Of a DNA stretch of 64,000 nt, positions 9,001-62,669 are shown piece after piece. Under the pieces are notes generated by a model that saw only the letters and a program-made list of their open reading frames with translations, was not told the DNA's origin and searched no databases. The position numbers and the translations under genes were made by a program. This DNA comes from Selaginella moellendorffii (Eukaryota; Plantae; Lycopodiophyta): positions 496,001-560,000 of the forward strand of contig NW_003314369.1 in the NCBI RefSeq assembly GCF_000143415.4. Direction: 5' to 3'. Position 1 is the first letter of the stretch; every line of letters starts with the position of its first letter.

Positions 9001-12000
9001 ATGGCAGATCTTTCGTCCACCACAGCTCTCCATTCATTGACAGTTTCTGTGAGCTGATCGAGAGTCTCAGGTTTTCTTTTAAGTTGCTGCTTGTTCCTAC
9101 AAAGCACAAGCTCACTAATCTTGCGAAACAAGATATAATACTTACTTTTCCATGTACGCATAGATAGACTCCAACTCTGTTTTAGCTATCGTATTGAGCA
9201 ACGTTCTGTGCACAAACGCAAAGTTTCAAAAAAAAAACAGTCCTTTCTGTGATTGCCAGTTTCCTTACGTAAATTTGGAGACCCAGGCCACGCAATGCGA
9301 TATGATCGCTTGTTTCAAAGGACCACAGTCAATACGCAAAAATCTCAAGTTCGTTATGCCTTCTTCACCCTGTTATATACTTGACATCACGTATCCAGTC
9401 AATCAGATTGTAAAAGTATACCTGCACATCTTCCTGCAGATCTCGATACTTTACAATGTCACTTTCAAAAGCAGAAAGTGGTTTCTTTGCTCGCTCGTAC
9501 CTGCATATGAGCCTTGTAAGGTTTCCATAAAGACGAGCTCAAACCTTCGTATAAACGCGTCCTTGTCTTGGTCCCAAATGCTTCTGTATTTCTTTTCCCA
9601 GTACTGAAGGTAGTGCTGAACTTTATCAGTTATTCCAATTACACCAGCGGTGATCATCATAAGGATCTCCTCTTGATCGGGACCGATGACCTGAAGAACA
9701 CATTCTGTTAAGCTCAGAGAAATTAATGAAGAGACAAGGAACCTCATAAAAGCTAGGAAGCGCTTCTTGAAAGCTGGCTTGTTTCCTCAAACGAGGAACT
9801 ACGGAAATGACAGTGACAAGTTCTCTAGCAACGATTTGTATCATCTCCAAAAGTTCCTGCAATTTCCATAGGCAACCGTCAATCTTCCAGTGACAAAGCC
9901 TAGTCTTAGCAGACGAACCTGCACCGATGGCATAAGCTTAACGCGCCCTGTTCCTTTATCCAGTACTCCAATGGCATTAAACATTGGCGTAGAGGACTTC
10001 GTATCAGCGTTCAGAGCGTTGGATAGTTCATTCAAGGATTTTGTCACACAATTTCTTAGTGAATTTTCCATGAAGACTTCCACCTGGTATTGTAAAACTG
10101 CAAAACTGAATGCATCATTAAAAATAGAAGAGGTACCTTCTTGTTATAATCTTCCCACTTATTATGTACTTCAACCATATCGCTTGCACATTTCTTGTTA
10201 GAGAGAGCAATCGTATCTTTGATGCTGAGGTAAGCCTTCTCAAAACGGCCTCGCATGATACCGCGGTGCTCAACTTGCTTGGATGAAAACTCTGCCAAGT
10301 CATATATTCGTTTCTTGTCGATGCTGATTAACCACGAGTCACTGATCGAATTACAAATCTGATTGATCTTTCTCTTCGCCGCTCGAAAGAGCGCTGTTGA
10401 TGCAAAGAGGACATGATTTTTAAAGCGAACCTCTTGTAGAAAATGCTCGAGCTCGTGTGCAGAAGAAGTCCACGTAAGCTAAAGAAAAAAATAAACATCA
10501 GATCGCACTCGAAGAATGAATGCAACTATACCCTATCCAAGGCTGGACTGATGCTGTTTCTAAGCCGAACAACGTGCTCAGCTATTAGTCCTCCTTCTTC
10601 AGTATCCAAATTATCAATCATCTGCATGAAGAAGTTGCAATACGAGAAATTTCGAACCGCAACCGAACCTTATTACAGTCACGGATCACTATGAGAACAT
10701 TAGCTCGAAGAACGCAAAGATCTTTATTATCTTCAATGAAGCTTGTAGCTACTTCCGGGACATCCCAGCCAAGGGATTTCCAGTAATGAACCTGCTTGCA
10801 GCAAGTTAACATGCCTCATAAGCAAATGGCCTTTGAAACTAACCTCCTGGTAGATAGCAAGCAGTTGAGGATCGAACTTTAGAACGTAAAATCCATCGCC
10901 ACCATCCTCCAGCAAGCTTCTTTCAAGCCTTTTTGGAAGAAGAGGATCAACACTGGCTGTCCATTCAGCATGCTGGTTCTGTACAAACTGCACGAGAAAA
11001 AAACAGGAACAACAACATCAATTTTCGAAAAGGATTTCTTCGGTCGCATAGTACCTGTTCGATCGAAGCCATTATTTGAGAAAATTGCGTGTGAATGTCA
11101 GCAGCATCTGGAGTTTCGAGCAAATACGGCGCCGCATTGGTTAAAAGCATCATAGGCTTCTTAAGTCGACGTTGAAACTGCAAAGCCCAAGTAGCTCCAC
11201 CGGCAAATCGCGGCAAAGCATAGTCCATCAAAGGACGTCTACGAAGTTGATCGAACTGCTTCTTCATAATCATTAACTCCATACTAAATGCTTGACATAC
11301 CTGTACTTTCAGATTAGTTTTTGCCTTGCAAATGGAAAACCTCCAAATTACCTGAGATCCCATTCTGTCAACGCACTTGCATATAGATTCCCTACACGCC
11401 AGTAACTTAAATGCCTCCAGCAACTCTATGCTTTCCGGCAATGAAGACGAATGACGAAACGCGAGGGACATAATATTTTGCATCAGTACCTGTATAGAAC
11501 ACAAAGAAGGTAAACTCAGGTTTGAACTTGCATGGCTTACCTCAAGATCTTGAATCCCACTTTTAAACTTTGCAAAATCGTCGTGCCACCGTGTCACTCT
11601 CACGTCGAGCAAGTTATACGAAAGCGAGCGCAACCCCGAGACAAGTTTTTGAAATGTGTCCTGAAGCTCGAACATCGACTTGGTAATCTCTAAACCTCTT
11701 GTTCCTCCAAAGACTGGCAACTTCATTCGCGTTGAAAACTGTCTTTGCGCATCACAAACCTGCCACGGCCGAAGTTGGTTGAAACATAGTTGCAGACGTG
11801 CCATACCTCCAGCATATCCCGACACCGTTGCAGGAACGCTTCGACTGCAGCGAAAACACTTCGATCGACAAGCTCGTTGTCGTCCTTGAATTCACCATCG
11901 TGTGCCGCTGCAGCCCTCATCATGGCTACGTACATGTGCTTCCACGATTCACAGGCTTGGACGCTCTCAAGAAGAGCCTTTTTGCACTTATCCACGTCCC

Positions 12001-16926: not shown

Positions 16927-18796
16927 ATGAAGGCTTTGCTCCTTTCGATCGCGGCGATCTTCTTCCTCTCGCATGGAGCGGCAGCTAGAATCGGCATCGG
17001 CGACGAAGAGCGGGTAGGGAATTTCAGAGATTTCTTCGGCAGCGCAGCGGCCGATCCAGCCGATGGAGCCGAGGCAGGGATTCTCGTCACGCTCTCCGAG
17101 ATGGGGATCAGCTACGTCCGCGAGGTTCTCGTCGATAGCGTGCTCCAGGATTTGACGCCGCTCAATCTGCCGAATGTGAAGCGGAGGGTGGAGTGGCCGA
17201 TTGGAATTGTGGATGTGGAGCTCAAGAACATTGTCATTGTTTATGCCAACGTATCGTCATCGAATGTAGATCTCGGGAACACAGGGATCTGGTTCAATGC
17301 TTCAGGGGTCGAGACCAAAGTCTCGCTGGATTGGAAGTACACTTACACGGCATCACTGATTCCATTTCCCATCTCTGATAGTGGCACCGCGACTGCAAAG
17401 GTAAGAAAGGTTTTTGCTTGTTTCAGAGACTTCGACTTGATGAAAAAACCATTTTTTTTCTTAAAGGTGAACGATGGAGACGCATGGTTGCAAGCTACAA
17501 TGCAACAAAAGAATGGAACACTGTCCATTCAGGTGACCGAGTGTAACACCGACTTATCGTCACTAGATTTGGAGCTGCAAGGCGGACAGTCGTGGCTCTA
17601 CCAATGGTGAGTTTATTTTTTCTTGTCGAGGAGCTAGAGGGGAAGATCATTAACAAAGCTTCTTTGTTGCTTGCCAGGTTCGTTTATGCGTTCAAAGGAC
17701 AAATACAAAAATCTGTCGAGTCTGCGCTTACGACACAGGTTCTCGCCGCTGTGAGTCGGCTAAATCGTTTGCTGCTCAGCTTGCCCAGGCAGCTCCAAGT
17801 GGACACCACTTCAGCCGTTGATGTCACGGTTGTCGACGATCCAATTCTCAACCAAAACTATATCAGCGTCGGGGTGATGGGGGAGTTTGTAGATATCGCT
17901 TCCCCCAGCGAAAGAAAGCACCCTCCAAAGAAGCTGCCAGCCGGATTATTATGCATTGATTCAGATGTGAAGATGATCACTGTGGCTCTTGGAGACTACG
18001 TTATTACCTCCGCGTCGGACGTGTACTATAAAGTAAGTCTGCAACGCTTTTGTTTTGTTTTCTATTTTTCGTTAGTGCTCAATGGCTTTCACAGGCAGGA
18101 CGATTAGAGAGGGTCGTGGATAGACTTCCACAGCAGTCCCTCCTCAATACTGCAAGTTGGAGATTTCTGATTCCGCAGCTGTATCGCAAGTTCCCAAACG
18201 ATGATATGTTACTCAACCTTTCTGCTGCTTCTGCCCCCCGGGTTTCTTTTTCAAGGGATGGGATTCGTGCGACCACTACGGCTGACATGACAATAGAGGT
18301 GGTGGACAACAACGAGATTATTCCAGTAGCTTGCATAAGTCTGGTACGATCATACAGAATTCTTCCACTTTGCTTTTTCTTTGCTTATTCTTGTACTTCA
18401 CTTTAGGAAGTTACGCTACATGCTTTGGCCGAGATTGTTGGCACTAACATCACTGGCGAGGCCTCACTTTTGGACTTGAGCCTGGACCTCAAGTGGAGTA
18501 CTATAGGCACTTTTCCAGTAAAGTTCGTCGAGGTAAGCGCCTACTGTTTCTTTCACATTATCTACCTAAAACGTTTGTTGCAACAGGTAGCGACGAGAAC
18601 CATCCTCAAAGACGTGATTCTACCACTGGTGAACTACAATCTCAAGAAAGGTTTCCCGCTGCCCGTCATTCCAGCGATCGAGTTCCAAGAAGCAACCATT
18701 AGATACGAAGACGATTTCCTGCTAATCTGTACAGACATCCGCTACACAGGCCTTCCGCTCCCTCCTCCCGTCGCTCCTTCGTGGTCCACCATCTAA
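16927..18796 (+). CDS. LBP/BPI/CETP-family (TULIP) lipid-binding protein, secreted; multi-exon
   Basis: Signal peptide MKALLLSIAAIFFLSHGAAA. BPI-N motifs GILVTLSEMGISYVREV, DWKYTY...ISDSGTA and LQGGQSWLYQW. BPI-C motifs SLLNTASWRFLIPQLYRKFPNDDM and LPLVNYNLKKGFPLP. Confidence 0.92.
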
Positions 18797-25060: not shown

Positions 25061-26417
25061 TCATGTCCCTTCACTGCTCTTGTTGGTATCAGACGCTGTC
25101 TTTGGGTGACCATCCAAATCATCCGGACCCGGCTTGGTCCCGCTGGTTTCCTGCTGAAAGGCCTTAAACATCCCCCCTGTGGAGATCGTGTCCACCTTGT
25201 TGGAGCCCGTCGCAATGTCGGCCAGAAACGAGCTGCCGCGGCTGGCATCCCCTTGAGCATCAATCCTCAAAGTTTTCGGGGCCCATAAAGACCCCTCTGG
25301 CCGCTTGGCCGGTCCCGCCCCTGCCACTGACTTCTCGTCCCTCATGTGCTTCCCCAGCGCCGTGTGAACATTCTGAGCGAGAACCTTTGCGGCTGCTGTT
25401 GCCGCGGTCGCGGCCATGCTCCCCCAAGGACTGTTGCTCCAGCCAGCCCAGCCGGGGAGATTCCATGGGCCCGTGCCATTGAAAAAGGCGTAGGGCCAAG
25501 CCGTCGTACCACCGCCACCCTCCCTGCACTCCTGGGCCGGGTTGGACACCGATGACCCGCAAGTCGAGTCGTCTCTGGAATCGTTGCTGCCTTCACTTGT
25601 GCTGCTCTGCTGCTGCTGAGACTGCCTTGAAGGATCCTCTTCAGTGCTGCGTGAAGTCGCGAACCCCCGGATGAAACCAAAACTTCCGCCTCTCCCGGCG
25701 TCGCTTGCTCGGCTAACCTTGCAGCTCGAATCCTGCTGCGGGAGCTTCGTCGCCAGCTTTCTCTCGGAGCTCTGCCCGGGATTCTGCTGAGGAGGAAGAT
25801 CACTCCCGGCAGCGGCAGCAGCACCACCACCACCACCACCACCATTTTCCAATCGCCCGTTCTTGTTCTTCCGGCGCCCGGCACCCACTGGAACGTTTCT
25901 CAGAGTGCCCCCGGCTGTCCAGTACCTCTGGCAGTTCTTGCAAAAGTGTCGAGGCTGGTTGACGTTGTAGTTGTTGAAGTAGCAAAATTTGGTGTCGAGG
26001 CTATGGCAGCGGGGGCAGGACACGGGCTTCTCAGGTCTCTTGAGTGGCCTGCCGCTCCTTTTGTCCTCTTGCTCCTCCGGCCTCCTTGGCACCTCCGCTA
26101 CACCGCCGCCGCGGCCACCGTGATCCTCCTCCTCCTCCTCCCTTTTCAAGGCTTTGTCATCGTCGCTGCCGCTGGTGCTGGCGGAGAAGCTCGCGATCTC
26201 TTCCGCGGTATTCGATATCACCTGTGATGTTTGTTTGCTCGCTAAAACTCGTAGATTTCCAAAAAGCACTTACCTCGGACTTCGCCAATTCAGCGGGCGA
26301 CGCGGCTTGATCCTCGTCCGCCGGTGTCACGGACAGCGAAATCTTCATACCAAACAGCTTCACGGCGTGGGAGAGCTCCCGCTTGGCCGCGCTCTGCCCG
26401 CTTTCTTTCACCGCCAT
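25061..26417 (-). CDS. Cycling-Dof-factor (CDF)-like Dof zinc-finger transcription factor, 2 exons (26417-26274, 26221-25061)
   Basis: N-terminal VKLFGMKI motif. Dof domain [53 protein letters not shown]-type C-terminal boxes LGKH and [11 protein letters not shown]. Confidence 0.93.
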
Positions 26418-45300: not shown

Positions 45301-46451
45301 AGTGCCTAGGTAAGGAACTTTGTTTACCTTAGACACATTCTACAAGTTCTCATACTTGCGCTTCCCGTCGTCCTCCTTAATCAGCTTCCAGGCTGCAGCA
45401 CTCTACCACCATTCTGGATTCTCTATTCTCTGAGAACCCTAAAAGTAAAAAGAAGTTTATCACGATGAATATTCTAAGAGGGAGGTGGTTAAGACTCTCT
45501 GGATGGATGCTGACACGTGAGGCAGTCCCAATCAGAGAGTTGCAGTGGCACTATATTTGCTACCGTGAGAAGGCCAAGCCTGGAGGCATTCTTCCACGCA
45601 CTCTAGATTCTCCACTTTTCACCAATTCAAAAGAGTGTGGTGTGATCGTCATCAACTCTATCAATGGTTTCAAAGGAAACTCTCATCCGTGAATATGGTA
45701 AGGTGGTGATTGTGCCAAGTCCAGATGCTTTTGATCGTAGCGTCTACACTCTTGAGGCTTTTACCTGGGGTTTTGGGATCTCGGACGTTTCCAGAGATGA
45801 CCTTGCCTTGGTACCAGTGGCGGACCTTGTAAGTAAGTTTTTGTTCGAGATTGTTTAGTGTTCAACTGACCCTGATATATAGTTGCTTTCGCATAGGCAA
45901 ATCATGGCTTCGGGCTGACCAATGAAGATCCTAGCTAGAATGCCAAAGTTTCCTCTTGCAAGGATCTCACCTCGCCAACAAAGTAGCTAGCATTACTATG
46001 CAGCTCTTCTCCTTGATCGAGGATTCCTCGACTGATAGAAGCATACAGGTTAAGTTCTAAACTTCCGCAAAGAAGATCATCTCATCAGTGGAGAGCTAGG
46101 AAGAAATGAGAGAGGACATGAAGGATTTCATCTGCTTGTGGACAGATCATTGCTCCATGCGTTAGAGGCTGTATCTCATGGCGTCGTCTATGAGATAGAG
46201 GCCTCGTGAGCTTATGATTTTAAAATAGCAATATTTCTATCTTAAATTTCTAAAATTGGCTAATACTTTAAAAATATTTAATAAATATCTAAAAATATTA
46301 ATTTTGAAGCACAAAAAATTATTATCATCTGATAAAAACTCTAAACTGCTATTATTACACATTCAAATGCTTAATATTATATTATTTACTTCTTGATATA
46401 TTTTAAGTATTAGGATGCTAAATGTAAAGCATATATTCCCAGAAAGATATA

Positions 46452-47374
46452 TAAACTAATATATTTTGTCAATGAAAAGTTTGCCATCTTAGTCTCGACA
46501 GGGAACTTGGAAAAGCAGCAAGAAGGAAATAAGACGCAGTAGTGGAGACGAATTTTTCAACGAATTTGATCTCTTTCCCAAGACAAAGTCTAGCAATTAC
46601 CTACGCCAACCACGTATATAAAACACCCGATCTAAAATGAAATGAAACACACACTTCTCTTCTAAAGATCGTCAAGGTCCAACTATTTATTTGGATATTT
46701 GTCCTTTTCAGTGGCAATGAAGTCGATAGCCATGGCGCGTGGTGATGCATGAGTTCAATAATATATATTATATAAACTGTGAAAAAAACTAAAGATGTTG
46801 CCTTTACTCATCTGGATTCACTCGTGTGTTGTTCTATGTCCCAGCATTATAGAAAAGAAAAGGAATTGACAAACTCGGAACGATTTCCTCGACTAACTTT
46901 CAAAGGACAAAGTGATGCCGCCCCAAGAGACGCCACAGCATTGTATGCTGCCTCCAGCTACAAATACGAGTGGCCTCACAGATCAAATCACTTCTCTCGA
47001 ATATACTCGTTGAACTTTTAGTTTTAGCAGCAAATCATGGAGAACCAAGGCTTGCTTGGTGTTGTTTTCGGTGCTTGCCATCTTTGTGCCGATGCTGGCC
47101 ATGAGAGTGGACGTGGGAGGAATCGAACCGCGAGGATGGCGCTAGTATGGCGGCAGCTGCCACCGTAACTAGAAAGCTAGCTCCTCTCTGTGATCGTAAG
47201 TTTCCTCTCGGCAATTTTGAATTCAACTATGAAGAACAAGTTGAGGGAACACACTATGACCAACAAATCCAATTGCCCATGTACGCTTATTCGCCATTGA
47301 CAAATCAAAGCTCTATCTTGTCAGTCAAGAGAATTCCAGGAAAACGCCGGTAAAAGCAAACGAAATGATCGATG
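46452..47374 (+). repeat. ~0.9-kb direct repeat, copy 1 (peptide-gene unit)
   Basis: Aligns by eye with 50525-51425 from taaactaata to gaaatgatcgatg. Confidence 0.9.
47037..47172 (+). pseudogene. Pseudogene of the Cys/Trp-rich secreted peptide
   Basis: Homologous to 49732-49929, with a +1 frameshift at codon 4 and loss of one repeat. The ancestral frame reads RGWR*YGGSCHRN* (TGG>TAG). Confidence 0.8.
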
Positions 47375-49089
47375 AGAGGAATCACTACCACGCAGACGTA
47401 CCGATTGAAGCCTCTAGAACAGGCCGTAGACGATCTAGAGCGGCGGGCATCGTCGCTCGACGACGACGACTACGCGCAACTCCTCACAGCTTGCATCCAG
47501 GAAAGAGATTTGCGTCAAGGCGCCAGGCTCCACGCGCTCATCCTTGGCAGCAGCCACCACCAATCCAACAGGTACCTCGCAAATCTTCTCATCCAGCTCT
47601 ATGGAAGGTGCGAGCGCGCGGATCGAGCATGGCAGGTGTTTATCAGCATCCACGAGCCCAACAGATTCTCCTGGAACTTGATGCTTGGCGCTTATGCCCA
47701 AAATGCGGATCTTGAGGAAGCAAAAGAGCTGTTTAAGAGATATTGTTGCATGGGTCCCTATTCTCACGGCTCATGCAAACCGTGGAAACTTGGAGGAATG
47801 CCAAGCATTGTTTGATCAGGTTCCAGAATGGGATGTCGTTTGCTGGAACTCGCTACTTACAGCATATGCCCATAACGGGCATATGGATTAGGCAAGCCAG
47901 GTCTTTGATGGAATGCTAGAACACAACATAGTTTCTTGGGCTGTTATGGTTACTGGGTATGCAAGAAAAGGCCCTGTTAACGACGCGCTAAATGTGTTTA
48001 TGAGAATCCCCGAAACCAACGAACTAGGATGGACTGTTCTTGTCACTACATATGCCCAGCTTGGGCATATTGAAAAAGCCAAGGAGCTTTTTAGTAAAAT
48101 GCCACACCGCGACTTAATCTCGTGGAACGCAATGCTAGCGGCAACGGCCAGCCTGCAAGAAGCAAGGTCTCTGTTTGATGCCATGCCACAGAGGAACGTT
48201 GCATCGTGGTCGACAATGATCACCGCACTGGCGGAGAGAAACCAGCTCGAAGAAGCTCGCATTCTCTTCGATCGAGTTCCCTATCACGACGACGTGGTGT
48301 GGATTGCCATGATCTTGGCCTACTCCAACCACGGCCACCTCGAAGAAGCCATGAAGATGTTTGCACGGATGCCACAGCGCGATCTCGTCGCTTGGACGGC
48401 AACGGTGGCGGCAATTGCTTTGCACGGGAGTTTGATCGATGCCAGAGCCTTGTTCGACCAAATGCCACAGCACGATCGCGTCGCGTGGAACACGATGCTG
48501 GGAGCTTTACATCCAGAGCAATTGCCTCGTCCAAGCGCGGGAGCTCTTCGTGGCCATGCCGGTGAGAGACACATCGAGCTGGAACACGATCCTTGCCGCG
48601 AGCGCTGAAGGGGGGAATGTCTTGCACGCCGGGAAGATCTTCTCCACATTGCCTGAACGGAGCATTGTGTTGTGGAGCGCGATGTTTTTTGGCAGCATGG
48701 CGATGGAGGGCGAGACGAGAAACGAGATAAGTTTCCAGGGGATTTTCCTGACTTGCAATCACGGTGGGAAGCTCCCTGTGGCACTCGACTACTTTCGATC
48801 TATGGTGGCCGAGTACAGCATTTCTCCAAATGTGATTCACTTCCAGGCGATGGCAGATGTGCTGGGACGAGCCGGGCTGGTTGCCAAGGCCGAAGCTCTG
48901 CTGCTGGTGATGCCCTTCCAGCCGCATTTCCTCGTGTGGAAGAGCTTGATCAGCGCTTGCAAAGTTCATGGTAGTGGCAAGAATTGCAGCTCGTGCCGCA
49001 GAGAAACTCTTGGAGATGAAACCAGGGGACTCTGGAGCTCTACGTGCTCATGCTCATGTCGAATCTGCAAAAGCAGCTGCGTCACATGA
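47372..49089 (+). pseudogene. PLS-class PPR pseudogene with E-domain remnant
   Basis: PPR repeats (SWNAML, VAWTA, ARxLFDxMPQR) are split across three frames, with a TAG at ~47889. C-terminal PFQPHFLVWKSLISACKVH. Confidence 0.85.
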
Positions 49090-49643
49090 GTCCATTTGGC
49101 CGGTTAACATTAAAGAGTCAACAAGTATAAACATTTAATTAATAGAATAACAGAAAATAATTATATGTAAATTAAATAAGAAAAACAATTTTAATGAATA
49201 AAATCTTGATAATTATTGATATCACTTTCATTAATCGTTGCAGATTGCTCCAAAAGATTGTCAAGAGCCTGCCAGTGAGAAGAGACAATGTAGCATTTAC
49301 CACTTTGATTAAAGTTGCAGGTGACTGGAAGCAGCCGTACTGAGTCTGTGGTCGAGATGGAAGACAAAGTATTAGGTTCGTGTTTAGGATATTAGCATGG
49401 AAGTTCTATGGAACTTTGAATCAAACACTTGTAAAGTTTTGGCAAAGCTAGTAGAGGAATGCTAGAGTGACTTTGGAGATAAGGATTTGAAGGGTTGGAG
49501 AAGCATAGGAAAAAGAAGAATTGGCAAACACGGAACCACTTTTACTGGACTAGCTCTCAAATATTCTTTCAGAGATAAGAAATAAGCGAAGCCGTCCCAA
49601 GACAACTCTCCAGCGTCCATCTAACATTTTGTGCTGCCTCGAG

Positions 49644-49651
49644 CTATAAAG
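49644..49651 (+). promoter_or_regulatory. TATA box of the peptide gene
   Basis: ctataaag about 85 bp upstream of ATG 49732. The context (gctataaagacgagc...cctcacagatcaaa) is conserved in the copy at ~50975; the copy at ~46960 reads ctacaaat. Confidence 0.6.
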
Positions 49652-49731
49652 ACGAGCCCCTCCTGCCTCACAGATCAAACCATTTCTCTCTAATATACAA
49701 GCTTACTTGATCTTAGTCTGAGCAGCAAATC

Positions 49732-49929
49732 ATGGAGAACAAGGCTTTCTTGGTGATGTTTTTGGCGCTTGCCATGTTTGTGATGATGCTGGCCATGGGC
49801 GTGGACGTGGGAGGAATCGCAAAGGCTGCTGCCCAGCGCTGCCAGTCGGGGTGGTATTGGTATGACAACAGTTGCCACCGTTGCCAGAGGGGTTGGGTCT
49901 GGCGCAACAATCGCTGCTGGCGCAACTGA
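49732..49929 (+). CDS. Small secreted Cys/Trp/Arg-rich peptide (65 aa) with two 14-aa RCxxGWxWxxxxC repeats
   Basis: Intronless MENKAFLVMFLALAMFVMMLAMG VDVGGIAKAAA QRCQSGWYWYDNSCH RCQRGWVWRNNRCWRN*. It has a hydrophobic signal peptide, a TATA box and paralogous copies nearby. Confidence 0.85.
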   Translation: MENKAFLVMFLALAMFVMMLAMGVDVGGIAKAAAQRCQSGWYWYDNSCHRCQRGWVWRNNRCWRN

Positions 49930-50227
49930 AACCTCCCGTTTCACGGGGTAAGCCCATGTTAAGAATCAACATCATAATTGCCTTTGATTTCATCATTCTG
50001 CAGTGCCAAGAAAGAATAAAGACACTGATAACGTGTTTTCTGATCGTGATGAGTTCCAGCAATAATAAATAAATTGTCCAGCTTGATATAAAAAGTCTGA
50101 ATGTCTCTTGCTCCTCCTCTCTTCTCCGAATCCCTCGACTTCCAATCAATGCATCGCTGGATTGATCGATTGCTCGACTCGATTGGAGCGTCACAACCAG
50201 GCCCAGGCACACCCAGCTCACCAAGGC

Positions 50228-50345
50228 GATGGCGCAGCGCTGCCAATGGATTTCGCTGCGTGCTATGCAATTGGTACGGGTATGACCAGTTGCCATCGAT
50301 GCCAGCGAGGGTGGCGCTCGAATGGCAGCCGCTGCTGAAGAATCG
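50228..50345 (+). pseudogene. Degenerate mature-domain copy of the Cys/Trp-rich peptide
   Basis: gcgcagcgctgccaa...tggtacgggtatgaccagttgccatcgatgccagcgagggtggcgc...cgctgctga encodes AQRCQ.../..SCHRCQRGWRSNGSRC*. It is frameshifted and has no signal peptide. Confidence 0.7.
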
Positions 50346-50524
50346 CCAAAGTTCGCTAGCCTGGCGCCTCGAAGAACCACGGGAGCGCAGTTTGAAATTT
50401 TCATGCCCCTGAGACTGTCAATGTGGTTTCTAGAAAGTTGGTTCACTTTTAATATCAAAAAAATTTAGAACGACTCAAATCTACATAGCTTTTGGACTAA
50501 AATTTATTATTATATAATATTAAA

Positions 50525-51425
50525 TAAACTAATACATGTTTTTGTCAATGAAATGTTTGCCATCTTAGTCTCGACGTGGAACTTGGAAAAGCAACAAGAG
50601 GAAATAAGATGCAGTAGTGGAGACAAAATTTTCAACGAATCTGATCGCTTTCCCAAGACAAAGTCCAGCAATTACATACACCAACCACGTCCCCTCTCTC
50701 GATCGAAAGTGAAATGAAACACTTCTAAAGATCGTGAAGATCCAGCAATTTATTTGGATGTTTGTCCTTTTCAGTGGCAGTGAAGTCTATAGCAATGGCA
50801 CGTGGTGATGCATGAGTTCAATAATATATATTATATAAGCTGTGCCTTTACTCATATCAGCATTATAAAAAGGAAAAGGAATTGACAAACACGGAACGAT
50901 TTCCTCGACTAACTTTCAAAGGACAAAGTGATGCCGCCCCAAGAGACGTTACAGCATTGTATGCTGACTCCAGCTATAAAGACGAGCGGCCTCACAGATC
51001 AAATCACTTCTCTCGAATATACTCGTTGAACTCTTAGTTTTAGCAGCAAATCATGGAGAACCAAGGCTTGCTTGGTGTTGTTTTCGGTGCTTGCCATCTT
51101 TGTGCTGATGCTGGCCATGAGAGTGGACGTGGGAGGAATCGCACCTCGAGGATGGCGCTAGTATGGCGGCAGCTGCCACCGTAACTAGAAAGCTAGCTCC
51201 TCTCTGTGATCATAAGTTTCCTCTCGCCAATTTTGAATGCATAATTCAACTATGAAGAACAAGTTGAGGGAACACACTATGACCACCGTTTCCTTTGTAC
51301 TGCACAAATGCAATTGCCCCATGTACGCTTATTCGCCATTGACAAATCAAAGCTCTATCTTGTCAGTCGAGAGAGTTTACTGTATCCCAGGAAAATGCTG
51401 GTAAAAGCAAAGGAAATGATCGATG
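50525..51425 (+). repeat. ~0.9-kb direct repeat, copy 2 (peptide-gene unit)
   Basis: Matches 46452-47374. Confidence 0.9.
51053..51188 (+). pseudogene. Pseudogene of the Cys/Trp-rich secreted peptide
   Basis: Carries the same frameshift and TAG as 47037-47172. Confidence 0.8.
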
Positions 51426-51600
51426 CCAAAGGTTGCATGTGGTGAGATGGGTAGTAATATCACGTCCATGCCTAATAGTCTTGCTGTTTCCAGGACAAGT
51501 TTGGTCACATAAGACCTGTGGCCATCAACAATGCGAGTGTGGTGGTTGTATACGAACATCCATTAGGGATTGATTTCATAAAGTGTTCAAGCCAATAGAT
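51426..51600 (-). mobile_element. pogo/Fot1-type (DDE_1) transposase fragment
   Basis: RIVDGHRSYVTKLVLETARLLGMDVILLPISPHAT matches the DDE_1 pattern hhDGHxSH...hhxLPPHxT. It is cut off at the repeat junction. Confidence 0.65.
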
Positions 51601-54981: not shown

Positions 54982-56196
54982 ATGCGGGCGATTCATTCGA
55001 TCGCGGTGGCTGGAGCTCCTGGAGATCGCGGCGGGCGCCGGCAATCTCCTGGCTATGGCGCTGCCACTGGCGCTGGATCATCGAGGTAGGAATTCTCGCT
55101 CCAGTTTCAGGGTTTTCAATCGCGTTTCTTTCGCAGATGGAGAACTCCCAAGAACAAGAGCGGCTCCAATGCTGGAATTCCGTCGATCTACGACGCGTTG
55201 CAGCAGGCGGGAGCGATTCCGGGCGTTGGTGTCGTGCTTGCGGCATTGACAGCGTGTAGAAACTCGCGAGACCTCCAAACAGGTAAGCGAGTCCATAGCT
55301 ACGTTGCCGAGCGAACGAATTACTGTTCTTCAAACAGCGTGGTGGCGAACTCTGTGCTGGATATGTACGCAAAGTGTGGAAGCATGGAGGACGCGTTGCA
55401 AGCTTTCTCTGAGATGAAGCATCGGGACGTCGTTTCGTGGACTTCCATGATCTCGGGATATGCAAGGTGTGGAGATGGCGCTCTGGCTCTTAAGTTCTTC
55501 GCGCGCATGCAAGAAGAAGGCTGTGAGCCGGATCGTGTCACGGTCATCGCAGCAGTGAAGGCATGCTCTAGCTGCGCAGAGAAGGAAGAAGCTCGCGAGA
55601 TACTAGGAAGAGCAGTGAAGATCAAATCGCTGGAACAGGGAAGAGCTCTTCATTCTCGAGTCGCCAGAGCAGGATTTGTCCGGGACCTTGCTGTGGCAAA
55701 CTCGCTGGTGGATATGTACTCCAAGTGTGGGAGCATGGAAGATGCACAAAAGGTGTTTGAGAGCATGAGGCAGCGGGACGTGATTTCATGGACTTCGATC
55801 ATTTCGGGTTATGCACAGGCTGGGGAAGCGGAGTTTGCTCTCAAGCTTTACTCGCGAATGCAAGACGAAGGCTGCGGTCCAGATCGCGTAACTCTCCTCG
55901 CTGCGCTCAAGGCTTGTGCTAGCTTGGCCGAAGGAGAGAAAGATGGTCCCTCGAGACAAAAGTGGCTGGAGCAGGGAAGGGCTATTCATTCCAAGGTCGT
56001 GGGAAGTGGAAACCAGTCGGCAAACTCTCTACTCGACTTCTACGCGAAGTGTGGGAGCATGGAAGACGCTTGCACTGTGTTTCAAGCTATGGGTCGTCAC
56101 AGCTCAATCTCGTGGAAGTGCATGATCCTGGGATATGTCTACAACGGGGAGTTCGAGCAAGCTCTCGAGTTTTACAAGCGCATGCAACTTTTCTAG
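54982..56196 (+). pseudogene. Truncated copy of the PLS-PPR gene at 60363
   Basis: Same 5' exon, intron and repeats as the 60363 gene, with a 12-bp deletion. It breaks at KRMQ (56188) and is fused to a different PPR remnant. Confidence 0.85.
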
Positions 56197-60362: not shown

Positions 60363-62669
60363 ATGCGGGCAATTCATTCGATCGCGGCAGCTGGAGCTCC
60401 TGGAGATCGCGGCGGGCACCGGAAATCTCCTGGCTATGGCGCTGCCACTGGCGCCGGCGCTGGATCATCGAGGTAAGAATTCTCGCTCCAGTTTCAGGGT
60501 TTTCAATCGCGTTTCTTTCGCAGGTGGAGAACTCCCAAGAAGAAGAGCGGCTCCAATGCTGGAATTCCGTCGATCTACGACGCGTTGCAGCAGGCGGGAG
60601 CGATTCCGGGCGTTGGTGTCGTGCTTGCGGCATTGACAGCGTGTAGAAACTCGCGAGACCTCCAAACAGGTAAGCGAGTCCATAGCTACGTTGCCGAGCG
60701 AACGAATTACTGTTCTTCAAACAGCGTGGTGGCGAACTCTGTGCTGGATATGTACGCAAAGTGTGGAAGCATGGAGGACGCGTTGCAAGCTTTCTCTGAG
60801 ATGAAGCATCGGGACGTCGTTTCGTGGACTTCCATGATCTCGGGATATGCAAGGTGTGGAGATGGCGCTCTGGCTCTTAAGTTCTTCGCGCGCATGCAAG
60901 AAGAAGGCTGTGAGCCGGATCGTGTCACGGTCATCGCAGCAGTGAAGGCATGCTCTAGCTGCGCAGAGAAGGAAGAAGCTCGCGAGATACTAGGAAGAGC
61001 AGTGAAGATCAAATCGCTGGAACAGGGAAGAGCTCTTCATTCTCGAGTCGCCAGAGCAGGATTTGTCCGGGACCTTGCTGTGGCAAACTCGCTGGTGGAT
61101 ATGTACTCCAAGTGTGGGAGCATGGAAGATGCACAAAAGGTGTTTGAGAGCATGAGGCAGCGGGACGTGATTTCATGGACTTCGATCATTTCGGGTTATG
61201 CACAGGCTGGGGAAGCGGAGTTTGCTCTCAAGCTTTACTCGCGAATGCAAGACGAAGGCTGCGGTCCAGATCGCGTAACTCTCCTCGCTGCGCTCAAGGC
61301 TTGTGCTAGCTTGGCCGAAGGAGAGAAAGATGGTCCCTCGAGACAAAAGTGGCTGGAGCAGGGAAGGGTTATTCATTCCAAGGCCGTGGCAAGTGGAAAC
61401 CAGTCGGATCACTTCGTGGCAAACTCTCTACTCGACTTCTACGCGAAGTGTGGGAGCATGGAAGACGCTTGCACTGTGTTTCAAGCTATGGGTCGTCACA
61501 GCTCAATCTCGTGGAAGTGCATGATCCTGGGATATGTCCATAACGGGGAGTCCGAGCAAGCTCTCGAGTTTTACAAGCGCATGCAATCAACAGGGTGTGT
61601 GGCGGATCGTGTGACTTTACTGGCAACTTTGAAAGCTTGCTCTACCTTGACGGCGGCAGGGGCATCAGAAGAAGCACTGGGAACTGCTGAGAAAGAAAGG
61701 CTCGTAAAGTTCAGGCTCAAGTGTCTCGAAACAGGAGCACGCATCCATTCTCAAGCTGGAACGCTGGACCTTGCAGTGGCAAACTCTGTGATCGATCTCT
61801 ACGCGAAGTGCGGTCGCATCACACTTGCTCGCAATCTCTTCGAAAGCCTTCCACAGAAGAACACCGTCTCATGGAACTGTATCATCATCGGGTATGCGGA
61901 GTGTGGGGAAGGCGCCGTGTCTTTGGAACTCTACAGACAGATGCGTCACACCTCAGGCTGTGCTCCAGACGCCGGTACTTTCGTGGCCGTTTTGAAAGCT
62001 TGCTCCAGCTTGGTGGCACTGGAATTCGGGAGGCAAATCCAGATGGAAGCCCGCAGTTTTGGACTAGAGAGAGATCCCATCGTCGCAAACGCGCTCGTTA
62101 GTTTCTTCGCGAAGTGTGGGAGCATGGCCGAGGCCGAGGAGGTATTTAGTTCCATTTTGAAGAAAGATTTAGTGACATGGAGCTCATTGATCGCAGGCTA
62201 TAGCTGCCGAGGCGACGCAACTCGGGTGCTGGACCTTTTCGAGAGAATGGAGAAAGTTGGCGGTGTGAAGCCAGACGGTGTTACGCTCCTCTCCGTTCTC
62301 ACTGCCTGTAGCCACGCCGGCCTGGTCGACAGAGCGAAGGACGAATTCAGAGCAATGCTCCGCAAGCATGGGATTGCTCCCACGATTCAACACTACACTT
62401 GCATGGTGGAGCTTCTCGGCCGCGCGAATCAACTCGACGAGGCAGTGAAATTGGTGAAAGGGATGAGCTGCAAGCCGGATGTTGTGATATGGAAGGCAGT
62501 GCTGGGAGCTTGCTGGAAGTGGAAGAACGTGGCGCTCGGGAGGCTTGCTTTCGAGTCCATCATGGAGCTCGACAATCAAAATGCCCCGGCTTACGTGCTC
62601 ATGGCCAATCTTTATGCTGAGGCTGGGATGCTGGAAGAAGCCGCAAGGATGCGCCGAAGCTTAAGTTAA
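60363..62669 (+). CDS. PLS-E class pentatricopeptide repeat protein (putative organellar RNA-editing factor), one 5' intron, no DYW domain
   Basis: ATG 60363 (MRAIHSIAAAG) splices via gtaag...ttcgcag (~60473-60523) into the 694-aa frame. Repeated ANSLVDMYSKCGSMEDA / DVxSWTSxISGYA / PDRVT triplets. E-domain QHYTCMVELLGRA...PDVVIWKAVLGAC...AYVLMANLYA. Confidence 0.92.

Follow-up and report, generated by a model that had tools for sequence, protein, structure and literature searches.

The A1 module of TNFR and the ephrin-receptor-like (GCC2_GCC3) repeat follow the pattern C-x2-G-aromatic-x-aromatic-x(4-9)-C, and each forms a short Cys unit folded as a disulfide-stapled beta-hairpin, with C-x2-C junctions between units. 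The CBM14 domain, as in tachycitin, Avr4, Der p 23 and the carbohydrate-binding module of chitotriosidase, consists of two consecutive small beta-hairpins with exposed aromatics and carries six Cys in about 50-70 amino acids (aa). Antimicrobial peptides of the tachyplesin/protegrin type consist of one 17-25-aa hairpin, which is held by one or two cross-strand disulfides and whose strong cationicity is conserved. Here we describe a gene at positions 49732-49929 of a stretch of 64,000 nucleotides (nt) from the lycophyte Selaginella moellendorffii (contig NW_003314369.1, forward-strand positions 496,001-560,000; the whole stretch is called the window). Its 65-aa product is predicted to be secreted and to release a peptide of two Cys/Trp-rich units, and it matched no curated family at threshold.

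The two-unit gene and its transcript

The gene lies on the forward strand and comprises 65 codons and a TGA stop, with the coordinates, the sequence and the two 14-aa units that an earlier interpretation of the letters alone (the sequence-only reading) had assigned to it. Its coding sequence (CDS) was covered by contigs of four sequencing runs. Hydropathy of the precursor showed a short polar N-terminal stretch followed by an 18-residue hydrophobic core (residues 5-22), and the spacer between this core and the mature part is GVDVGGIAKAAA. The predicted signal peptide and the spacer together occupy 49732-49833 (+). The spacer recurs as GVDVGGIA-x-A-x-A, ending in an AxA/Q site, in three paralogs, namely the window gene and the two relatives from other loci described below. 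Cleavage before Gln35 at this site would free a mature peptide of 31 aa (49834-49926, +).

The mature part is built of two 14-residue units, CQSGWYWYDNSC-HR and CQRGWVWRNNRC-WRN, each with the pattern C-x2-G-W-x-W-x4-C and linked by two residues, and its overall Cys pattern is C-x10-C-x2-C-x10-C. The predicted peptide has a mass of 4.1 kDa, an isoelectric point (pI) of 9.7 and a net charge of +4.8, and contains 5 Trp, 6 Arg and 4 Cys. With a predicted signal peptide (a heuristic call), a precursor of 65 aa and four Cys in a pattern, the product shows the generic features of plant secreted cysteine-rich peptides (CRPs). A degenerate DNA pattern for C..GW.W....C matched the window three times, against 0.05 matches expected, and all three lie within 49840-50335; the strict motif was absent elsewhere in the 64 kb in a six-frame scan.

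Transcription of the gene was examined with public sequencing data. The 31-mers of 49600-50100 were present in at least 20 public runs from 7 studies among the matches listed, and contigs of 4 public runs were mapped onto 46400-51600. The bins 46400-46747, 49358-49531 and 50576-50749 had zero depth in every mapped run, indicating that the runs behave as RNA and not as DNA. The contigs spanned about 49679 to 50390 of the window (49679-50389 covered), and those of three runs from three studies (X1 with four contigs, X2 and X6) joined 49947 directly to 50004. The missing 56 nt form a GT..AG intron of the 3' untranslated region (49948-50003, +), which begins 18 nt past the stop codon, and thus the gene is transcribed and spliced; the sequence-only reading had proposed RNA coverage of this region as a check. 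Since the intron starts so close behind the stop codon, nonsense-mediated decay is not expected.

A TATA box (TATAAAG, 49645-49651, +) lies in a block that is kept in both of the pseudogene copies described below. The coverage starts at 49679 and the 5' tail of one X6 contig resembles 49677-49693, which places the 5' end of the transcript, as we infer it, about 30 nt downstream of the TATA box, near 49677-49679. Two AATAAA signals are found at 50015-50020 and 50064-50069 (+), and the main 3' end probably falls within 50015-50069. Contig depth drops about 40-fold from bin 49880-50053 to bin 50054-50227, with contigs still running to about 50390. The spliced mRNA is about 330 nt long, and its only sensible open reading frame (ORF) is the 65-aa precursor. 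The transcript variants listed (F6L, M9L, S47G and V56S, with codon effects worked out by hand) alter no Cys, Gly or Trp. Summed contig depth over the CDS was orders of magnitude above that over an adjacent PPR pseudogene in the same runs, a hint of high transcript abundance from what is a poor measure.

The mature peptide is predicted to be all beta and to form two tandem beta-hairpins. The AlphaFold2 model of the 31-mer alone had a mean predicted local distance difference test (pLDDT) value of 85, with strands at residues 7-10/13-16 and 21-24/27-30, and a model of the precursor from a small alignment gave the same two hairpins with pLDDT 82-86 across the mature part. The structure prediction suggested by the sequence-only reading thus returned the hairpin fold. 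The turns fall on DN and NN, and other units of the family carry DG, NN, TG or SG at this place; all of these pairs are good beta-turn formers. One disulfide within each unit appears the most natural arrangement, because the family members differ by whole units, and both the one-unit form and the single units of prokaryotic look-alikes have two Cys (exactly two in the latter); a laddered pairing is also possible.

Relatives and decayed copies in Selaginella

A phmmer search, exhaustive over 1.84 billion representative proteins, returned one plant match, the S. moellendorffii protein XP_024531936 (P0002), named "putative pectinesterase 11". Its residues 1-52 are 60% identical to the window precursor and include the spacer, the AxA/Q site and one and a half units; beyond residue 52 it continues with an acidic linker and then a pectinesterase domain. 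No pectinesterase was found inside the window or within 10 kb of the second cluster of the family (L004, below), and XP_024531936 is probably a read-through or fusion artefact. No orthologs outside Selaginella were seen in this search, and a word-index protein search with the window precursor gave no candidates. Two further phmmer matches (P0001 and P0004) were rejected as repeat or low-complexity artefacts.

A profile search added SELMODRAFT_416301 (P0010), in which the family signal peptide is followed by repetitive AGTG-type sequence. The AGTG repeats are what GWNW-type units give when read in the +1 frame; codons are compatible at 17 of the 17 residues that overlap XP_024531936, and three units are possible under the decoded pattern. 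The DNA of the L004 locus (scaffold GL377595.1) confirmed this decoding residue by residue, and SELMODRAFT_416301 is an out-of-frame model of the first decayed copy there. The same locus holds an intact, unannotated paralog of 89 codons (L004:9078-9347, +, at about 339.1 kb of GL377595.1) with four units, 8 Cys and 8 Trp; its product has a pI of 7.7 and a net charge of +0.9. Three decayed copies follow within L004:10001-12084 (near 10001, 10906 and 11736); they have up to about five units and show frameshifts or loss of Cys. Exact look-ups found the products of neither intact gene in a collection of 15 billion proteins and its called genes, which bears out the earlier expectation that the gene had been missed by annotation. 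No description of the family or of the motif GWYWYD was found in the literature searched.

Around the intact gene in the window, the sequence-only reading had seen three decayed paralogs, at 47037, 50228 and 51053. All three exist, but those at 47037 and 51053 are not independent of each other. Self-comparison of the window revealed a direct segmental repeat of about 0.9 kb, with copy A at 46448-47374 (+) and copy A' at 50521-51425 (+), whose ungapped blocks are 91-97% identical, and each copy contains the same one-unit pseudogene (47037-47172 and 51053-51188, respectively). In both, one extra nt follows codon 3, the first Cys is lost in a 21-nt deletion and the second Trp codon has become TAG; because the lesions are identical, the gene was already dead before the segment was duplicated. 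As had been claimed for their core promoter, the two copies are 81-83% identical to the intact gene over about 200 nt that include the promoter with its TATA region, the 5' untranslated region and the signal-peptide block. Their shifted-frame reading ends in SCHRN-stop. Contig depth was nil over 46922-47095 in copy A and about 9-13 at copy A'.

The copy at 50228 had been counted among the one-unit pseudogenes, a description that holds for 47037 and 51053 only. It is the relic of a two-unit mature region (50226-50338, +), identified by motif pattern and frame analysis. The relic has no signal peptide and two of its Trp are lost; it can be read only with two or more frame changes and runs into a stop right behind its last Cys. 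It falls where low-level read-through extends 3' of the intact gene, and related transcripts differ there by indels of +2, -7 and -12 nt, which fits non-coding drift. That the relic might be intact in other transcripts was rejected, since with the listed variants applied the stop and a 7-nt deletion remain.

The one-unit copies correspond to the two-unit gene minus exactly one 42-nt period, and unit number therefore looks to change by whole periods. The modular unit number proposed earlier is borne out across the family, which has one unit in the pseudogenes, two in the window gene, four in the intact paralog and, in one decayed paralog, about five. The family spans at least two loci, its genes have 1 to about 5 units each and many copies have decayed; the local tandem clusters of intact and decayed copies, at the window as at L004, agree with the birth-and-death mode that had been suggested.

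Sequence constraint was assessed between the intact genes, with few sites and with scaffold positions that also served to define the units, so that the test is supportive and not decisive. For the end of the signal peptide and the spacer, the comparison of window gene and L004 gene gave a nonsynonymous rate (dN) of 0.29 and a synonymous rate (dS) of 1.1 (dN/dS about 0.27); for the last two units, dN was 0.44 and dS 0.63. Among the six intact units, the scaffold positions (C, G/N, W, W, C) showed proportions of nonsynonymous (pN) and synonymous (pS) differences of 0.06 and 0.41, and the loop positions 0.51 and 0.66. A dN/dS near 1 across paralogs had been named beforehand as a sign against the family; the value was about 0.27 for the spacer block and about 0.7, on very few sites, for the mature units overall. 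The pattern is suggestive of the usual CRP picture, a fixed scaffold of Cys, Gly and Trp with loops that are free or diversifying. Positive charge is not a family property, as the values of the window peptide (+4.8) and the four-unit paralog (+0.9) differ.

Between copy A and the intact gene lies the PPR pseudogene mentioned above (47365-49089, +), which is context only and outside the peptide family. It comprises three overlapping ORF pieces with PPR repeats, and paralog transcripts differ from it by single-base indels; the gene, frameshifted into three pieces, is probably a pseudogene. Two further PPR ORFs (55198-56196 and 60585-62669, +) have repeats at identical positions in their first 330 residues, the second with an E motif, and are likely tandem paralogs. 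Elsewhere in the window, a Dof zinc-finger ORF (25061-26266, -) matches SELMODRAFT_448037 with 100% identity along 97% of the ORF. An ORF at 10965-11825 (-) matches the N-terminal region of dynein heavy chain and another at 16927-17610 (+) the LBP/BPI/CETP N-terminal domain, and both are probably exons of larger genes.

Described families and prokaryotic look-alikes

No curated Pfam or NCBIfam family was matched at threshold by the window peptide or the four-unit paralog. Profiles of defensin, thionin, snakin/GASA, hevein, LTP, RALF and other curated plant CRPs did not appear in the Pfam scans at E up to 1 for the window peptide and up to 10 for the paralog, in line with the earlier statement that the peptide fits no known plant CRP class. 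The only Pfam match of the window peptide itself was DUF4215 (E 0.58). The four-unit paralog matched PF23091 (TNFR_ELAPOR1_6th) with E 2.6e-4 and 20-21 bits, below the cut-off of 33.2, and PF07699 (Ephrin_rec_like) with E 0.08 and 13.2 bits, below the cut-off of 23.1. These matches suggest similarity at the level of the motif only. The family shares the unit pattern, the stapled hairpin (by prediction) and the C-x2-C junctions with TNFR A1 and ephrin-receptor-like repeats. Those repeats, however, belong to large membrane receptors in which different module types are mixed, whereas the Selaginella mature product would consist only of 1 to about 5 units of the same type, each built around GWxW and following a strict period of 14 aa.

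Structure searches gave a similar result. Foldseek against the PDB with both models gave no match with E up to 0.001, and its weak rows (E above 1) were Cys-rich domains of mGluR, CD40, 4-1BB and EphA2. An exhaustive VIA-align search reached Z 2.1-2.6 at a root-mean-square deviation (rmsd) of 1.2-1.9, with CBM14 chitin-binding domains in 5 of the best 10 rows, and the best ESM Atlas shape match, which covered all 31 residues with TM 0.72, was to a CBM_14 protein of an arthropod; both the Z and the TM values are within the chance range for a 31-residue model. The ESM Atlas feature search gave a best score of 0.76, below the level counted as more than a lead. As modelled, the window peptide would resemble CBM14 in its two consecutive small beta-hairpins with exposed aromatics, a likeness too weak to indicate common descent or binding of chitin. 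The peptide has only four Cys in 31 aa, and the PF01607 (CBM14) profile did not match the plant peptides in the Pfam scans.

PDB sequence searches gave no match at threshold; the best was 6a7t_A (E 0.15), the N-terminal hairpin of a long-form C-type lectin. In such lectins (SPL-1, snaclecs) this hairpin has nearly the same motif and spacing, CQSGWEWFGGSC in 6a7t_A against CQSGWYWYDNSC in the window peptide, and it superposes locally on the window model with an rmsd of 0.7 over 16 residues (Foldseek). However, in the lectins it accounts for no more than the opening 15 residues of a domain about 130 aa long, whereas the window product lacks the remaining 110 or so and ends 3 residues after its second unit. 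A zinc-knuckle match from the PDB sequence search (1dsv) was rejected, as neither the His nor the spacing is present and secretion is predicted for the product.

Among antimicrobial peptides, the Impatiens Ib-AMPs, tachyplesin and protegrin are, like the window member, small, cationic, Trp/Arg-rich, disulfide-constrained (by prediction for the window member) and beta, and the Ib-AMPs share its N-terminal Gln. They differ from it in Cys pattern and disulfide topology, and the Selaginella family has tandem modular hairpins and a charge that is not conserved. The analogy to tachyplesin and protegrin drawn in the sequence-only reading therefore turned out weak, and membership of that type was rejected: the family has two to four tandem hairpins with one Cys pair each, and its four-unit paralog is nearly neutral (+0.9, pI 7.7). 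Cyclisation of the N-terminal Gln to pyroglutamate and cross-links at the WxW motifs, both raised in the sequence-only reading, are hypothetical. Membership of the alpha-hairpinins (CX3C-Xn-CX3C, helix-loop-helix) was rejected as well, because the Cys pattern is another one and the prediction is all beta.

The remaining phmmer matches were prokaryotic or virus-like. Three metagenomic proteins of 83-85 aa (P0005, P0007 and P0009) have the pattern C-x3-GWYWYDNxC-HRC-x2-GYVW-x5-C followed by a C-terminal hydrophobic anchor, and the module described by this pattern is 56-59% identical to the window peptide over 27 residues (E 4e-5); E-values of 1e-4 to 1e-5 in this search rest on a short Cys/Trp/Tyr-rich stretch. 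Two larger proteins, P0003 (FISUMP domain) and P0006 (Ig-like/PKD domains), contain repeated single EECxxxG[WF]YWY[DN]xxCH units between acidic linkers. In comparison with the Selaginella units, the prokaryotic modules have one extra residue before the Gly, an acidic and not a basic context, and a membrane anchor or large Ig-like/FISUMP proteins around them. P0005 also matched PF01607 weakly (E 0.0096, below cut-off). The genes of the look-alikes sit among those of secreted Ig-like proteins, and P0009 is encoded in an array of small unknown genes that share one strand and show faint matches to phage families. Two contigs, L003 (17 kb, from Logan run SRR16071516) and L001, encode the 83-85-aa GWYWYDNxCHRC proteins in such one-stranded arrays of small genes, together with Big_3_5 proteins, a transglutaminase-like protein and a phrog_9224 match, and may represent prokaryotic viruses or mobile elements. 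The likeness of the plant and prokaryotic modules may reflect homology, gene transfer or convergence.

Candidate roles of the peptide family

The reading we favour, to which we give about an even chance, is that the locus belongs to a lineage-specific Selaginella family of small secreted Cys-rich peptides whose most likely role is that of an extracellular binder or defence peptide. The signal peptide would direct the precursor to the endoplasmic reticulum, and a cut at the AxA/Q site would release the mature peptide. The 31 residues would fold as the tandem beta-hairpins WYWY-DN-SCHR and WVWR-NN-RCWR, each stapled by its own disulfide (C37-C48 and C51-C62), and the alternating Trp and Tyr side chains would build exposed aromatic faces. 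These faces might attach to microbial surface polymers such as chitin, other glycans or membranes, where the charge of about +5 of the window member would aid binding. Such a role is favoured because the family turns over fast in tandem clusters, the transcript is found widely across runs, and what is conserved is a ladder of aromatics carried by a rigid mini-scaffold. In addition, surface or chitin-binding proteins are where related modules and the nearest shapes are found.

Several points weigh against this reading. Secretion, signal-peptide cleavage and disulfide connectivity are predictions. The dN/dS of the mature units overall is about 0.7, from very few sites. The shape scores show a common double-hairpin shape and neither kinship nor function, and contig depths cannot measure expression. 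The difference in net charge between the two intact members (+4.8 and +0.9) weakens a cationic, membrane-active mechanism.

A signalling ligand in the manner of EPF, RALF or LURE, perceived by a receptor kinase and with variable loops that set specificity, is an unlikely alternative. Such ligands have the same precursor logic, in which a signal peptide and a conserved spacer precede a small mature part rich in disulfides; the loops vary on a fixed scaffold, and the nearest sequence-profile hints are receptor-type Cys repeats. However, the transcript occurs in at least 20 runs of 7 studies with very large contig depths (again a poor measure), and the rapid pseudogenisation, tandem clusters and changing unit number would be more usual in defence or effector-like peptides than in conserved hormones. 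The phmmer search also showed no orthologs beyond Selaginella.

We regard as improbable that the peptide binds or structures the plant's own cell wall, its aromatics docking on cellulose, pectin or another wall polymer in a wall or surface role and not in defence. Small disulfide scaffolds that display planar Trp/Tyr arrays are a typical feature of carbohydrate-binding modules, the aromatics are conserved and the charge is not, and the weak CBM14 shape matches point in the same direction, as does the RefSeq model that joins a family member to a pectinesterase, though it is apparently a fusion artefact. Against this, neither locus studied has a pectinesterase nearby, and birth-and-death turnover is unusual for structural components.

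Quite improbable is a reading in which no new family exists and the peptides are diverged members of a described one, TNFR/ephrin-receptor-like GCC2_GCC3 or CBM14. The PF23091 and PF07699 matches of the four-unit paralog and the weak Foldseek and VIA-align rows (mGluR, CD40, 4-1BB, EphA2 and CBM14) speak for it; every score is, however, under its curated cut-off, the window peptide matches only DUF4215, and Cys-pattern matches are common among short repeats. There is only a very slight chance that the transcript is real and the ORF untranslated or its product unstable, the RNA being non-coding or that of a decaying family member, as might be suggested by the neighbouring copies, most of which are pseudogenes, since the window ORF is intact while silent copies have decayed, the scaffold codons are kept despite synonymous change, and the listed transcript variants keep the frame, the Cys and the Trp.

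A bolder form of the binder or defence reading, which we hold only tentatively and consider unlikely, takes the 14-aa GWxW hairpin as an autonomous, unnamed glycan- or surface-binding mini-domain. It would be common to prokaryotic or viral surface proteins and a lycophyte by deep homology or gene transfer, and in Selaginella would be released as a free, abundantly transcribed, antifungal (chitin-binding) tandem-hairpin peptide. If true, it would represent a new structural class of plant defence peptide.

S. moellendorffii is the reference lycophyte genome, and the family appears well transcribed there yet is absent from the protein sets searched; the only two models found for it are a pectinesterase fusion (XP_024531936) and an out-of-frame product (SELMODRAFT_416301). 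Expression atlases and comparative peptide surveys are therefore blind to the family, because they are built on an annotation that lacks it. If the peptide exists, it would offer a scaffold that is compact, modular and easy to synthesise, made of 1-5 repeats of a 14-aa Trp hairpin stapled by a disulfide, and that could be used for studying the origin and the unit-number change of plant defence or signalling peptides. The family also offers a testable case of a Cys/Trp module that it has in common with surface proteins of prokaryotes.

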